Below, one piece after another: positions 13,947-31,073 of a stretch of DNA of 64,000 nt. The notes beneath the pieces were generated by a model. The model ran no database searches and was not told the origin of the DNA. It saw only the letters and a program-made list of their open reading frames with translations. The stretch lies in sequence record MW879344.1, one strand, 5' to 3'. Made by a program: the position numbers and the translations under genes. How positions within the stretch are numbered: position 1 is the stretch's first letter; every line of letters starts with the position of its first letter.

Positions 13947-14522
13947 ATGAAATTTACTGAACTGAATGCTGAACAACAAGCTAGAGCAATTGAAGTACAT
14001 CGTGATATTAACGTAGATTATCAAGAATGGAATGATTTTGTTAAAGAAGAACATCATTCTAAACTTGAATTAGTTGGGTTCGATGGTGTAGAATCTGCTT
14101 ATTCTGGTTTTTGGTCACAAGGTGACGGTGCTAGTTTTACGGCTAGTTCATTAGATATTGAAAAGTTTTTACGTTCACAAAAACGCTGGACTTACTATCG
14201 TCCATTGCATGAAATGATTCGCATTAACGAATTGTGGGTTAAAGTTGTTCGTACTACACATCATTATTGTCACGAAAATACTACACAAGCAGAATTACAT
14301 GGTGAGCATTACATTGACTTAACTCCACGTCAAGAAAAATTATATGAAGAACTGGAAAAGGAAATAGATGCATATATAACTAATGCAGGTCAAGAATACT
14401 ATCGTGCTCTGAACAATGAATATAATGATCTAGTTTCAGATGAACAAGTCAAGGAAACAATAATAGCTAATGAAATGGAATTTGAAGAAGATCCACGCGA
14501 AAGCTGCGTAACTTATATCTAA
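13947..14522 (+). CDS. Hypothetical acidic early protein
   Basis: SD GAGAG; SGFWSQGDGASF motif. Confidence 0.8.
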   Translation: MKFTELNAEQQARAIEVHRDINVDYQEWNDFVKEEHHSKLELVGFDGVESAYSGFWSQGDGASFTASSLDIEKFLRSQKRWTYYRPLHEMIRINELWVKVVRTTHHYCHENTTQAELHGEHYIDLTPRQEKLYEELEKEIDAYITNAGQEYYRALNNEYNDLVSDEQVKETIIANEMEFEEDPRESCVTYI

Positions 14523-14860
14523 ATTCAAAATAGGGATTGACAAGTTCAATCCCTTTTGATACTATATCAGTACTGAAACGGAGTTATATGAAAAAGAAAT
14601 ATATAGTTCTGTACAGTACTTTAAACGAAGCTTACATTCAAGGCCAAAAAATGGAACGCATTGTTCAAGTACTGATTGTTATTTTATTCATTTTGTACTG
14701 GATACTGTAATGCGAATAATCAAGTACTACAATGGTGTAAGTATTAAAATGATTGATACCGATCATTTTGTAGTACAGAAAGGCCGTATAAAAATTACTT
14801 GCAAACGTGCCGTAATTGCATTATACTATTTCTATCAACTAATCATTAAGTGAGAAGAAA

Positions 14861-15196
14861 ATGAGAAAACCAAACGTAGAATTACTTTGCGATTCACATC
14901 ATGGCGTTTACATTCCGCAAATTATGATCCATCGTCTTAAAGACAATGGTTGGCGTAATATCCCACTTAATGCCGTGGAAGTACTTTCGCATCCAGATAA
15001 TGAAGATTATTGGGATACATGGAATCAAGTACTTGACAATGCTGAATGGCATGATGAATACACTACACAAGTCTTTAAGCTACATCATGATGGTGACTTG
15101 TGGGCGTATTGTGAAGCGTCAATGTCGCCTACAGAGTATCATAACATGTTCGGTGAATATCCTGAATGGTTCAATGAAGAACTCGAAGAAGCTTAA
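14861..15196 (+). CDS. Hypothetical acidic early protein
   Basis: SD-like GAGAAG; HHGVYIPQ..YWDTW..LHHDGDLW. Confidence 0.8.
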   Translation: MRKPNVELLCDSHHGVYIPQIMIHRLKDNGWRNIPLNAVEVLSHPDNEDYWDTWNQVLDNAEWHDEYTTQVFKLHHDGDLWAYCEASMSPTEYHNMFGEYPEWFNEELEEA

Positions 15197-28290: not shown

Positions 28291-29063
28291 TGTTATCAAT
28301 TAAAGATTTAATAACATGTCAACGTACTTGGGATGATAAAATAAGAACAATCGCAAACATGATTGATCCTAAGTTACTATCCATTTTATCATATGAAGAC
28401 ATATTCAATGACAAGTACAAGGATGATACTCTACAAGAAAAATATACAGAAATAGTTTATCCATTAATTGTAGAGTATAAAAAAGAATTTAAAGAATTAA
28501 GAGACAAATATCTATTGGATTATATTAATGATATGGGTAATGTACTTGATTCATTGGGCTATTATGTCGATTCAGGTGAAGAAGCAGGTAATGTACTTGA
28601 TTCAATTACTAATGATTTCATTCCATGTGTTGAAATTGAACATGTATGGAATTATGTATACAATGAACTTCAGATAGATATTCATCGACCGTTTTGGGTA
28701 AGAAGTGGATACAGTTTAGTTGGTAATAATGAATATGTATCAGTAGAGAGTAATAGTTCTCCATCAAAATTTATTGAATACAATAGAAATAAATTTAATA
28801 GAAGTTATGGTGAAAAGCGAATAGATATATTTAAAAGATCGGTACGTCAGGCTGATGAACTATTTGATTATGATATTCATATTCAACCTCTTTCTAAATT
28901 CGAAGATGATAAATTACCTAACAATTATAATGATGCAGTACGTAGGCATTTAATTTTACGTCATGCATTAGAAAATCAAAATTTAATAGAAGACAATGCA
29001 CATTACATATCAAAGATTACAGAAGAAGGTGAAGTGCAGTTCTTGGTAACGGGATATTTTTAA
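28290..29063 (+). CDS. Hypothetical protein
   Basis: TAATG coupling, 257 aa. Confidence 0.8.
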   Translation: MLSIKDLITCQRTWDDKIRTIANMIDPKLLSILSYEDIFNDKYKDDTLQEKYTEIVYPLIVEYKKEFKELRDKYLLDYINDMGNVLDSLGYYVDSGEEAGNVLDSITNDFIPCVEIEHVWNYVYNELQIDIHRPFWVRSGYSLVGNNEYVSVESNSSPSKFIEYNRNKFNRSYGEKRIDIFKRSVRQADELFDYDIHIQPLSKFEDDKLPNNYNDAVRRHLILRHALENQNLIEDNAHYISKITEEGEVQFLVTGYF

Positions 29064-29848
29064 TGTTTTTAAAATTCTTTTTAACACTCAATAATTCAAC
29101 AGGTAGATTGGTTGGTGGAAATTCAGGAAAAAATAAATTACTAGTTAGTACTCATAACGATCACAAAAAGGAACGGCATGAGACTATAACATTTAACAAT
29201 GTACTAGATTCATTCATGCGTTCCATTGATAATCCTACTCGTTTCGACTTCGGTCTTAATCAGACTAGAGAAATATTAATCAACATTTCTGATGAAGCAA
29301 TGTTCCAATTAGAAACATTATCTGTACCAGAAAATTGTTATTGTACCTATAATTTAAATACTAAGTTAATTGGATTTGGTAACAATATGGCTGAAGCAGA
29401 AGAAGCGACACAGGAAGATAATTTTGGATGGGGATACAAATCTAAAAGTTCTAATAATGATTTATTCTTTAATTATTTTGTTGAGATGCCAACAGTACTA
29501 CCTTATAAATTTACTGTACCTGATGTATTTTATGAGCAAGTACTTCAAGAACTGAAACCATATATTGTTAATGAAAAACTTCATATATTCAAAGGATTCA
29601 GTGATTTTGTACTAAAGAGCAGTAAAGAAATAACTGAGTATTTTGATAATTATTATACTGAAGTTTATGATGAATCTAAGATACGTTCATTATCACCATT
29701 TAAGAAGTCCGAGATGCGTAAAGTGATTGAATGGTTCATGGAGGATGATATTGACATTGTAGCCAATAAAGAATCCTTAGCTATTGAGTATGGTACTATA
29801 GGTATTTTGTGTAGAAAAATAATGAATGTTTCTGGTGAAACGTTCTAA
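29063..29848 (+). CDS. Hypothetical protein
   Basis: TAATG coupling, 261 aa. Confidence 0.8.
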   Translation: MFLKFFLTLNNSTGRLVGGNSGKNKLLVSTHNDHKKERHETITFNNVLDSFMRSIDNPTRFDFGLNQTREILINISDEAMFQLETLSVPENCYCTYNLNTKLIGFGNNMAEAEEATQEDNFGWGYKSKSSNNDLFFNYFVEMPTVLPYKFTVPDVFYEQVLQELKPYIVNEKLHIFKGFSDFVLKSSKEITEYFDNYYTEVYDESKIRSLSPFKKSEMRKVIEWFMEDDIDIVANKESLAIEYGTIGILCRKIMNVSGETF

Positions 29849-29869
29849 AAAAATGTGTTATAATATATA

Positions 29870-30309
29870 GGACAGCAAGATAGCTGTCCTTTTTTAATTG
29901 AGAAAAACTCTGAATGGCCTTGTTAAACAAGGAAGTTTTAACCCTGATCCTATCGAAAAGTAGATGGCAGATGAGTAGATCATTCAGTACGAACAGCAAA
30001 AGAAACCCGTTAGAAGTACGTGCAGTCAATCAAATGCGACATAAGACACTGAGATCACGGCGATGCGGCTGTATAAAGCATGACAGTACTACATAAGTTC
30101 ATGCCTAGATAGACATATAGGATCGCACCTACCTAATGTATAAGGGAGTCAAAAATGCGATTGATTTATTACAATATAGATCCGTCCAGAATTTGACAAG
30201 TACTGAAGCTGTTCATGTAGCTTTTGTACTAAGTGTAGTAAGACTACGACCGTTGTATAGAACCGCGATAGGGAGAAACCGGACAACCCGCTTCCGCTCA
30301 ATTAAGAAA
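29870..30309 (+). ncRNA. Candidate large structured ncRNA (~420-440 nt)
   Basis: Extended -10 TGnTATAAT(29856-64); 13-bp closing stem TTTTTTAATTGAG(29890-902)/CTCAATTAAGAAA(30297-309) with a G-U pair; many internal stems; ~700-bp gap without a credible ORF. Confidence 0.55.
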
Positions 30310-30545
30310 TTCGTGACATGAAATTGCTATGACTATCATCGTCAGTTTTATTCTTCCCTCCCGATGGGGGGATGAAAATGCATCAACAAATCTCGTCAGT
30401 ACTATTAAGTAAGTAACTATAGAATGTAAATTCAGAATGAACGTAGTGCTAACGAAGTTCAGAATGAATTTACTGGAACATCACAAGATGTTCCTTGTAT
30501 AATGAGAATCAGCAAAGTACTGATTCTATGTAAAGTGAGATGTAA

Positions 30546-31073
30546 ATGAAAGTTGTATACAAATGCAAAAATACGGACACAGTACTTGATTCCGTAGATA
30601 TGAGTACGTTTAATGGTTATATTATTCAAGTGGAGAAAGGAAACAAAATCAGCAATATTACAGAAGTTTATAAGAATGTAGTACTTGCTAAGATTAGTTT
30701 ACGACCCTCCAAAACACCACTCATACACAAAGTTGAATACAATGGTCATATAGAATACCGTTACAATAACAACAATGTTAGTAGTGTTTATTATGAATTT
30801 AATGATAAAAAATATGGAGAGTACTTAAAATTTGATTTGAATGGAATACTTTTGGATAGGATTTTCTATTACGAAGGAAAGGATGTAACTTCAGATATAA
30901 TTCAATTTCTTGGTTACACTGATGATTTATCTTCATTTAAGAATTATGAATTTAAAGAAGATGAACTGTTTAACATCATGATGAAGTACGGTTTTTATTT
31001 TAGATTTCGCAATGAATCGGAACGGGATAGTTCTGAATTTGACCGTATCACAGAGTACTGTCAACACATATAA
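30546..31073 (+). CDS. Hypothetical protein with MORN-like segment
   Basis: YEFNDKKYGEYLKFDLNGILL..FYYEG; C-terminal EDELFNIMMKYG. Confidence 0.75.
   Translation: MKVVYKCKNTDTVLDSVDMSTFNGYIIQVEKGNKISNITEVYKNVVLAKISLRPSKTPLIHKVEYNGHIEYRYNNNNVSSVYYEFNDKKYGEYLKFDLNGILLDRIFYYEGKDVTSDIIQFLGYTDDLSSFKNYEFKEDELFNIMMKYGFYFRFRNESERDSSEFDRITEYCQHI

Follow-up and report, generated by a model that had tools for sequence, protein, structure and literature searches.

We analyzed the first 64 kb (positions 1-64000, hereafter the window) of the genome of Erwinia phage pEa_SNUABM_49 (MW879344.1), a jumbo phage of the genus Eneladusvirus (species Eneladusvirus BF) with a genome of 358,049 bp; a BLAST comparison showed that window and record coordinates are identical. 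A coding gap of 697 bp at 29849-30545 holds the locus studied here, named c1. Based on comparison with related sequences, we conclude that the segment 29836-30494 forms a gene of its own, encoding a highly structured non-coding RNA of roughly 600 nucleotides (nt), whose family appears to be new. The family has five members in this phage genome (c1 to c5) and further members at the edges of defense islands in bacterial chromosomes, and we tentatively suggest that each copy may act as a start site of phage DNA replication.

Covariation and coding content of the locus

Homologs of the element were retrieved with a pattern derived from two invariant blocks (50 loci in IMG/VR, 72 in metagenomes and seven in a genome collection), resulting in 121 complete instances, of which 95 were unique and 67, those below 94% identity, were used for pair counts. 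In the 5' domain (29903-30150, 37 proposed pairs), 88.0% of the alignment cells were paired, compared with 66.9% for shuffled and 31-47% for slid partners, and 32 of the 37 pairs had changed on both sides, with a covariation score of 0.478 (0.150 when shuffled and at most 0.098 when slid). The 3' domain (30196-30404, 47 proposed pairs) reached 94.2% paired cells (74.3% shuffled, 41-47% slid) and a score of 0.605 (0.228 shuffled, at most 0.147 slid), with 33 of its 47 pairs changed on both sides. Compensatory changes were present in 65 of the 84 proposed pairs, and the observed covariation scores were reached by none of the 500 shuffles in either domain. Such an excess of compensatory substitutions over controls that keep the relatedness of the sequences is what marks a structured non-coding RNA and, as judged from these alignments, cannot be due to chance. 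A separate alignment of 11 syntenic gaps likewise displayed invariant blocks between variable hairpins. The first-pass annotation of the region had described a large, ornate non-coding RNA and suggested that homologs be collected and checked for covariation. With pairs covarying across the 67 homologs well above the slid-partner controls, a non-coding context, two pseudoknots and a conserved promoter, this description is now supported, and every sequence feature that the annotation listed is present in the letters of the window where it had been placed.

Because G.U outnumbers A.C by 451 to 122 in the proposed pairs, the + strand is the folded strand, and the wobble pairs that had been taken as a sign of selection at the RNA level are indeed in excess. 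Compared with shuffled sequences, the minimum free energy (MFE) of the + strand had a z-score of -2.13 and that of the - strand one of +0.38.

Four open reading frames (ORFs) of 50-77 codons lie in the gap, and frameshifts and one to six in-frame stops were found in nearly all relatives, including the closest ones, Yersinia phage fHe-Yen9-04 and Cronobacter phage GAP32. Because all four ORFs are broken in the nearest relatives, the gap 29849-30545 is, from its sequence, non-coding, and the two ORFs that the first-pass annotation had dismissed as spurious share the fate of the others. Differing small hypothetical ORFs, on either strand, are also annotated across the RNA gene in the deposited genomes of fHe-Yen9-04, Salmonella phage 7t3, Erwinia phage Kaldavass and Klebsiella phage Muenster (L002:1614-2095, L008:1546-2146, L004:1547-2205 and L154:1117-1718, respectively); since they differ from genome to genome, they are almost certainly spurious.

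GC content is 0.41-0.435 within the gap and about 0.30 in its flanks. The nucleotide identity of the region across phage genera is 70-90%, and a comparison made for Pectobacterium phage CBB found only about a third of proteins to be shared between phage genera (PMC5259590). When 3.4 kb were compared with metagenome contigs, the RNA element was the best-conserved nucleotide stretch. Public sequencing runs that contain the region are for the most part DNA metagenomes, and four runs labelled as RNA, two of them probably DNA, yielded nothing but short contigs from relatives. The gap is flanked by conserved hypothetical genes (29063-29848 and 30546-31073), and genes for a Dam methylase and a cytidylyltransferase come after the downstream one. 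The same gene order, with a gap of 690-740 bp, is present in fHe-Yen9-04, GAP32, CBB, Xanthomonas phage XbC2 and Kaldavass, as well as in Escherichia coli, Salmonella and Klebsiella phages belonging or close to Asteriusvirus.

Secondary structure of the RNA

In total, the fold comprises at least 14 helices and two pseudoknots (PK1 and PK2) within about 600 nt, all on the + strand, and helices P1, P2, P3, P4, P6, P7, P9, P10, P11 and P12 all covary. In the 5' domain, P1 (CTGAATGG/TCATTCAG, 29910-17/29980-87; 85.9% paired, 8/8 pairs compensatory) encloses the P2 hairpin CCTTG/CAAGG (29918-32; 4/4 compensatory), the P3 hairpin with its conserved loop GAAAAGUA (29949-67; 91.3% paired, 5/5 compensatory) and the conserved strand CAGAUGAGUAG (29968-78). 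P4 (29993-97/30068-72; 93.3% paired, 4/5 compensatory) encloses the conserved AAAAGAAACCCGU, P5 (CCGU/ACGG, 30007-10/30057-60; 97.6% paired) and CAAUGCGGC. The alignments show two alternative cassettes that are swapped among paralogs, and one of them forms the top of P5 (30011-56). The variable hairpin P6 (GCATGA/TCATGC, 30078..30104; 85.3% paired, 6/6 compensatory) is followed at 30105..30147 by the conserved junction CUAGAUAGACAUAU, the P7 hairpin (UAGG/CCUA, 30118-21/30128-31; 83% paired, 3/4 compensatory) and the near-invariant UAAGGGAG. P8 (GUCAAA/UUUGAC, 30148..30198), supported by the alignments and the MFE fold, carries the conserved module ACAAUAUAGAUCCGUCCAGAAUUUG, which in c4 and c5 sits in P13 (around position 30300) rather than in P8; the motif ACAAUAUAGAUCCGUCCAAAAUUUG is in P8 of some paralogs and in P13 of others. 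A helix YYCU (29908-11)/AGGG (30143-46) that would close the 5' domain is compatible with the data and was left out, as it shows only Y-for-Y changes and overlaps P1. Resemblances to a hammerhead (CUGAUGAG-like) and to a sarcin-ricin loop (AGUACGA) were dropped because the relevant bases are variable.

The 3' domain begins with the P9 hairpin (AGTAC..AAGCT/AGCTT..GTACT, 30199..30230; 94.8% paired, 10/10 compensatory), whose loop UUCAUGU forms PK1 with ACAUGAA (30212-18/30316-22; 98.3% paired, 7/7 compensatory). The core (within 30234..30322) contains the covarying P10 (GTAG/CTAC, 30234-48), the invariant CGACCGUUG, P11 (30264-68/30311-15; 98.8% paired and covarying), P12 (GGGAG/CUUCC, 30271-75/30291-95; 100% paired, 4/5 pairs covarying) with its conserved loop AAACNGNNCAACCCG, and P13 (30297-308). 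PK2 (GUUGY/RCAAC, 30252-56/30283-87) is 100% paired and includes one covarying pair (CG 41, UA 23, AU 3), the other four pairs being fixed by the retrieval pattern and so without weight.

Five of these helices (P1, P2, P6, P9 and P10) had already been pointed out in the first-pass annotation, and they are 83-95% paired across the 67 sequences, with nearly all pairs compensatory. Two longer-range pairings proposed there did not hold. A 13-bp stem joining the ends of the element (29890-902/30297-309) pairs at 13/13 positions only in pEa_SNUABM_49; the nearest relatives retain 11/13 without compensation and more distant ones 6-9/13, and this stem was rejected. As for the suggested GGAAGT/GCTTCC contact, CUUCC pairs instead with GGGAG at 30271-75 to form P12.

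Downstream of the core, P14 (30329..30345; 64.7% paired, with an uncertain pairing register) is a small hairpin ending in the sequence UCGUCAG, designated box 1. The hairpin predicted within 30348-30378 was recovered as P16 (CCUCCC/GGGGGG, 30357-71), which is 94.5% paired with only C or U opposite G. The near-invariant GGGGGGAUGAAA and a second UCGUCAG, box 2 (30392-98), complete this part (within 30357..30398). The two boxes are direct YCGUCAR repeats (30339-45 and 30392-98) and vary together in four independent lineages, to CGUCAA, UGUCA, CGACAA and ACGAAG. The motif GGGGGGAT is found once in each copy and nowhere else on the + strand of the 358-kb genome, five times in all. A leader peptide at GGGGGGAUGAAA was considered and rejected, for the conserved bases from GGGGGGAUGAAA to CGUCAG are read in two different frames among the copies. 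The 50 nt after box 2 have a GC content of 0.24, compared with 0.41 in the core, and the A+T-rich 3' tail (30399..30494) contains ACGNAGUG motifs. Within it, the hairpin GTAAATTCA/TGAATTTAC (30426-34/30465-73), which had been noted before, shows compensatory changes in Eneladus/Mimas orthologs, and a terminal hairpin GGAACAUC/GAUGUUCC (30475-94) ends the conserved unit.

Promoter and limits of the transcript

The predicted promoter of the RNA gene (29836..29864, + strand) consists of a -35-like TGAAACG (29836-42) and a TG-extended -10 box TGTTATAAT (29856-64), with a 17-nt spacer between TGAAAC and TATAAT. The -35-like box is located inside the end of the upstream coding sequence (CDS), whose stop codon is at 29846-48. 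The extended -10 box, recognized in the first-pass annotation, is well conserved: TGnTATAAT is invariant in 11/11 syntenic orthologs, and a TGnTAYAMT box is present 260-400 nt upstream of the core CGACCGUUG block in 50/53 family members. In other copies, the -35-like box is GGAACA or GGGACA in place of TGAAACG. The combination of TGAAACG and TATA is that of the 'divergent RpoD-like' promoter class of CBB and GAP32, which is mostly found upstream of a region rich in DNA-synthesis genes (PMC5259590). A count of TGnTATAAT over the whole phage genome gave 64 on the + strand against 22 on the - strand, which suggests some 40 real extended -10 promoters; the RNA-gene copies pair the extended -10 with a TGAAACG/GGGACA box 17 nt upstream.

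A terminator scan detected a hairpin (AGGACAGC-loop-GCUGUCCU) followed by U6 at 29869..29895 on the + strand, with an 8-bp stem that begins 5 nt after the -10 box. It reads as the terminator of the upstream operon and, on read-through, as the 5' stem-loop of the RNA. Its GGACAGC/GCTGTCC stem (29870-89), which the earlier annotation had picked out, undergoes compensatory changes in relatives, and the arrangement is kept with covarying stems in all c1 orthologs. The c1 start site may possibly fall within the 5' arm, which would shorten the terminator stem. In other paralogs, the c1-type 5' hairpin is absent or has no U-run; in c2, c4 and c5, a hairpin resembling a terminator and bearing U7-9 separates box 1 from the C4/G6 hairpin, within the conserved region. 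The upstream gene is ended by a terminator in c1 and c4, and a recognizable promoter of its own is present in 4/5 copies. No clear terminator was seen at the 3' end of the element among the phage copies examined. Here, a further TG-extended -10 box, TGTATAAT (30496..30503, + strand), is conserved in Eneladus/Mimas orthologs, marks the right limit of the element, and is read as a separate promoter of the downstream gene 30546-31073.

Comparison with known RNA families

Covariance-model searches of the 64-kb window with the families of Rfam 15 (including ROOL, GOLLD, HEARO, OLE, raiA, RNase P, tmRNA, group I/II introns, and 6S) gave no match at gathering thresholds, and at E≤10 the searches of c1 (1 kb), c4 and one island copy returned only unrelated sRNA/snoRNA noise far below threshold. 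No tRNA or tmRNA gene was found in the window by ARAGORN. The initial judgment that the RNA is neither a tmRNA nor an RNase P RNA nor a group I/II intron agrees with these results and with the gene having its own promoter. In particular, an intron was rejected because the upstream CDS has its own stop codon, a terminator ends the upstream gene in c1 and c4, 4/5 copies have their own promoter, and the flanking proteins represent separate conserved families. Elsewhere in the record, about 35 tRNA genes, clustered in a block at 270-320 kb, include an annotated tRNA with the anticodon CTA (labelled tRNA-Pyl, genome 290410-290485), possibly an amber suppressor tRNA, and a gene annotated as 'ribonuclease H' is present at genome 196560-197546.

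That the searches missed a known family, or that the locus is a chance fold or a set of unannotated small proteins, seems to us extremely unlikely. It is true that the group I intron models of Rfam are known to be insensitive, and ACAACCCGCUU may bear a loose resemblance to the CR-V region of RNase P. However, three divergent copies had no Rfam match even at E≤10 and ARAGORN was negative, the promoter and the c1/c4 terminator speak against an intron, and the broken ORFs and the covariation speak against small proteins and a chance fold.

Our literature search found no published description of this RNA, and none of 65 phage records carries an annotation for it; a survey of more than 10,000 candidate structured RNAs in viral contigs reported motifs of 29-151 nt only (PMC10690425). 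Because it has no Rfam family, published description or annotation in these records, we rate the RNA family as a new class absent from Rfam, in line with the undescribed class that the first-pass annotation had thought possible.

Five paralogs at regular positions in jumbo phage genomes

Exactly five copies were detected in the pEa_SNUABM_49 genome, both by BLAST and by a covariance model (R1) of the core (30234..30322), which scored them at 74-97 bits and the next match at 22 bits. Each occupies its own coding gap of 600-800 bp: c1 at 29849-30545, c5 at 93176-93833, c2 at 174993-175795 (between minus-strand genes), c4 at 259293-260031, and c3 at 336345-336956. All are on the + strand, as are nearly all genes. 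Successive copies are separated by 63, 82, 84, 77, and 52 kb, a spacing more even than that of five random points on a circle (minimum-gap p = 0.006, maximum-gap p = 0.001, spread p = 0.002). A related 366-kb contig gave p = 0.0002-0.0003; as it is syntenic with pEa_SNUABM_49, these tests are not independent.

A BLAST search of phage records with the core found 4-5 places per genome. The family was detected in Eneladusvirus, Mimasvirus and Asteriusvirus by BLAST and in Klebsiella phage Muenster (Alcyoneusvirus) by covariance model (70 bits), and thus in at least four genera of phages with 350-kb genomes. In metagenome contigs with a GC content of 0.42-0.45 (L094, L106, L134, L146, and L101), the 3' core is common and the 5' domain is quite different; in these divergent members, ACGAAG replaces CGUCAG in both boxes. 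Paralogs cluster by type across genomes, each at a syntenic position in related jumbo phages, so the duplication is old, and each position has been retained rather than homogenized. The genes downstream of the five copies have no common function: they include unknowns, a DUF5856 gene, an ADP-ribosylglycohydrolase gene, and portal and baseplate neighbors. The ADP-ribosylglycohydrolase gene is just downstream of c4 (genome 260032-260961, L015:46032-46961; Pfam E 1e-70), and its product may provide counter-defense against DNA ADP-ribosylation.

The main rival to the origin proposed below is an RNA that acts in trans, mass-produced from the five genes either as a self-assembling RNA of the ROOL, GOLLD and OLE kind or as the scaffold of a ribonucleoprotein or ribozyme. 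In a variant of this explanation, PK1 would be intermolecular and would sort the copies into homo-oligomers, and the island copies described below would be decoys or would exploit the phage or host partner that the phage copies use. We consider a trans-acting RNA possible but doubtful. The size of the RNA, its many invariant unpaired nucleotides, the conserved hairpin loops (GAAAAGUA and AAACNGNNCAACCCG) and the two pseudoknots would fit it well, and PK1 is paralog-specific, with four different sequences among the five paralogs that are always self-matching. In ROOL and GOLLD, loop pairings that covary were at first taken for tertiary contacts and then turned out to bridge separate molecules (10.1101/2024.12.08.627333). 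PK1 can be read in the same manner, as covariation cannot separate intramolecular from intermolecular pairing, and the joint changes of the two YCGUCAR boxes in four lineages are as expected for one partner reading both. On the other hand, multi-copy genes need neither even spacing nor fixed positions and tend to homogenize, whereas the paralogs here are ancient and position-specific; there is also no protein common to islands and phage that could serve as the partner.

Copies in bacterial defense islands

A genome scan located the element in Serratia fonticola GTA-SR07, whose chromosome is complete. It is also present in assemblies labelled Serratia sp. 2723, Enterobacter chinensis and Enterobacteriaceae RIT714, in two Enterobacterales metagenome-assembled genomes (MAGs; the labels of the carriers include a Buttiauxella MAG), and in a 2.8-kb contig of a MAG labelled Clostridium. 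The bacterial loci searched with the model scored 76-86 bits. Wherever a copy could be placed, it was single and located where the core genome (GC content 0.5-0.6) gives way to an A+T-rich island about 8-10 kb in size. In all three arrangements observed, the RNA gene occupies the edge of the island and is transcribed into it, and the island copies retain the promoter, the whole core and the tail.

The islands belong to a family with a shared backbone (L148:5909-16417 of Enterobacter chinensis JARDVI010000005.1, and further L151-L153 and L073/L150). This backbone consists of an integrase (a tyrosine type of 433 aa or a large serine recombinase of 520-560 aa), a small resolvase, an LprI-domain protein, an unknown protein of 233/286 aa, an HTH_35 Cro-like protein, and a CI-like S24 repressor, on whose gene, cI, the RNA gene converges. 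The defense cargo is DarT with an ADP-ribosylglycohydrolase and a UvrD-like helicase, TIR with a STAND (nSTAND) NTPase, or nSTAND3; the S. fonticola island has a serine recombinase and two ParB/RepB-like genes instead. The ADP-ribosylglycohydrolase of the DarT-carrying type is different from that of the phage. Insertion sites also differ (hofB-nadC, next to thiM, and next to rof/tilS). The 233/286-aa proteins could not be assigned a function with PHROGs, Pfam or PADLOC, and no recognizable replication initiator was seen among the island genes examined. No homologs of 12 island proteins were found in the phage genome by tblastn, and the RNA element is the only sequence found to be common to the islands and pEa_SNUABM_49.

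With an integrase, a regulatory switch and no capsid or conjugation genes within the 8-10 kb, these islands have the gene content of satellites without transfer or structural genes of their own, and we regard them as satellite-like, that is, candidate satellites of jumbo phages. In Pseudomonas, a 2025 study has shown that a jumbo phage specifically packages and transduces islands that have an integrase and defense cargo and no transfer genes; how the phage is hijacked is left open in that study, which makes no mention of an RNA (PMC12595487).

Two further explanations were considered. Under the first, the element would be a cis-acting transcription element, namely a long leader that modifies RNA polymerase (processive antitermination, similar to HK022 put or EAR) or licenses read-through. 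Antitermination would then recur about every 70 kb in the phage, and in the islands it would let phage-triggered transcription pass through cI (antisense) into the cro operon. The even spacing, the placement on the same strand as most genes, and the terminator-like hairpins in or next to the element, with none clear at its 3' end, agree with such a role, as does the fact that the island element converges on cI and is sense-upstream of cro, the 233/286-aa gene and the LprI gene. Nevertheless, we think a leader unlikely. Known antiterminator RNAs are 70-120 nt long, far short of 600 nt, and another promoter-like box, for the gene downstream, comes after most copies. Moreover, the c1 terminator precedes the RNA and so is not overcome by it, the S. 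fonticola island has nothing sense-oriented after the element for at least 3 kb, and the downstream genes share no common function.

Under the second, the element would act mainly as DNA, serving as a recombination or homology handle or as a cluster of protein-binding sites, with a secondary role for the fold; the islands would keep the best-conserved DNA of the helper for recombination-dependent copying. Infected cells do replicate plasmids with mere T4 homology (PMC3016281); no other part of the 3.4 kb compared is as well conserved as the element, which also contains repeated boxes and ACGNAGUG motifs. We nonetheless judge a DNA-level role very unlikely, since at least 65 compensatory pairs, the one-strand excess of G.U and the conserved promoter point to selection on a folded + transcript, in the island copies too, and some island copies match the phage copies compared at only about 70% of positions, which makes them poor substrates for homologous recombination.

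A possible role as replication start site

That the copies are fixed, evenly spaced and co-oriented in the phage and point inward in the islands speaks for a function in cis on the DNA molecule that carries the element. As a best guess, less likely than not and only slightly ahead of a trans-acting RNA, we tentatively favor the view that each copy is a cis-acting origin of the T4 type whose transcript primes replication, and that satellite-like islands have copied it. In this scheme, the phage-type promoter would fire during infection and the nascent RNA would fold; helped by the G6 run, by both YCGUCAR boxes and by the A+T-rich stretch behind them, the fold would keep the transcript in place as an R-loop. 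The 3' end of the RNA would then prime the leading strand in the direction of transcription, in which nearly all genes run, and five sites about 70 kb apart would speed the copying of the 358-kb genome. An island with an inward-pointing copy at its edge would be amplified by the replisome of the infecting phage and, in the manner of T4 origin plasmids, could form packageable concatemers, making it a satellite of the jumbo phage.

T4 provides the background for this proposal. At least five of its origins are active early; oriF and oriG consist of a middle-mode promoter combined with an A+T-rich unwinding element, the origin transcript forms an R-loop and primes the leading strand one way, and plasmids with a T4 origin, or with mere phage homology, replicate as concatemers in infected cells (PMC3016281). 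The phage studied here possesses T4-like genes (a gp20-type portal, endonuclease VII, and a baseplate protein), and a T4-like replisome has been discussed for CBB (PMC5259590). The element itself has an origin-like anatomy, with a promoter of a phage class, a G6 run that occurs on the + strand at the five loci only, and an A+T-rich stretch after box 2.

Several observations weigh against an origin. For T4 origins, about 100 bp is enough, and they have neither a motif in common nor a conserved RNA fold (PMC3016281). With its roughly 100 near-invariant nucleotides in loops and junctions and its two pseudoknots, the new RNA is closer in appearance to a ribozyme, a protein-binding RNA or a self-assembling RNA than to a primer, and even spacing in a single orientation would equally suit a cis-acting transcription element. 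GC skew tracks gene orientation only, with no break at the five loci. The terminator-like hairpins, both the one directly after the c1 start site and those upstream of the G6 run in c2, c4 and c5, are not explained by an origin. In addition, the A+T-rich stretch (GC content 0.24) is about 530 nt from the start site and not directly after the promoter, and intergenic DNA is A+T-rich anyway.

A fuller version of the proposal, which we offer as a speculative possibility, is that the five RNA genes are the origins of Rak2-like jumbo phages and work through a folded primer or licensing RNA, and that the edge copy would let an infecting phage replicate and package the island. If true, this would be the first RNA-structured class of origins in phages and would supply the missing hijack mechanism of jumbo-phage satellites. 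Whatever its precise role, the family could reveal how giant T4-related genomes start replication or organize transcription, and could explain how jumbo-phage satellites recognize and exploit their helpers. In practice, it corrects spurious ORFs in many deposited genomes and offers a metagenome marker for this phage group and its candidate satellites.

Comparison with known systems

The closest counterparts of the proposed origin are T4 oriF and oriG, which belong to a related phage, are present at several sites per genome, combine a phage promoter class with an ordinary -10 and an A+T-rich stretch downstream, have been proposed to prime in one direction, and cause foreign DNA that bears them to be replicated in infected cells (PMC3016281). 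They differ in that the element described here has a covarying structure of about 600 nt with about 100 near-invariant bases, conserved in four genera, and in that its origin role is a proposal. A second parallel is RNA II of ColE1, a transcript of about 550 nt made from a promoter of its own. Depending on how this transcript folds, a G-rich part of it may or may not stay hybridized to the template and prime DNA synthesis; RNase H processes it at the origin, and an antisense RNA controls it. The distance from the start site to the boxes is likewise about 550 nt here; we found no similarity in sequence or structure, and in our case the phage replisome and five copies per genome would be involved. 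RNA II has been cited as a parallel to the T4 origins as well (PMC3016281).

Concerning the islands, the best comparison is island I55 and phage JPTI55, in which small islands also combine an integrase with defense cargo and are without transfer genes (PMC12595487). That system is from Pseudomonas and has no reported shared RNA or cis element; the Enterobacterales islands are candidate counterparts.

Long non-coding RNAs (lncRNAs) are also present in PA5oct, a distantly related, Rak2-related jumbo phage, where ncRNA001-004 (236-619 nt) were defined by RNA-seq and two of them are highly expressed throughout infection (PMC7318152). Like the new RNA, they are located in coding gaps. The core covariance model matched neither ncRNA001 nor ncRNA002, and no conserved motif was seen in them by eye. 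The PA5oct lncRNAs at L068:764-999 and 14452-14902, which account for up to 5% of phage reads, lie in the long terminal repeat and are unrelated to the new family, so jumbo phages of the wider clade may carry several unrelated large RNAs. Among smaller RNAs, HK022 put and EAR are also cis-acting as nascent transcripts, altering the behavior of polymerase downstream, and phi29 pRNA is a phage RNA that multimerizes via covarying loop-loop pairs. These RNAs are 70-174 nt long and single-copy, and no similarity to them was detected; packaging motors of the T4 type are not known to need an RNA.

Large and highly conserved RNAs are rare in bacteria and phages, and most known classes are ribozymes, ribonucleoproteins or self-assembling cages. 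ROOL, GOLLD and OLE are similar to the new RNA in their length of 500-800 nt and intricate covarying structure, and ROOL and GOLLD are encoded by phages or prophages. The new RNA differs from them in having no Rfam match, in not being beside tRNA genes (none in the window, with the block at 270-320 kb), in its five evenly spaced paralogs, and in its carriers, which are Enterobacterales jumbo phages and chromosomal islands. Its fixed copy number, even spacing and sharing with satellite-like islands have no described parallel among large non-coding RNAs. Together with the phage-specific promoter, these properties, including the presence in defense islands, offer functional handles that ROOL, GOLLD and OLE lack.

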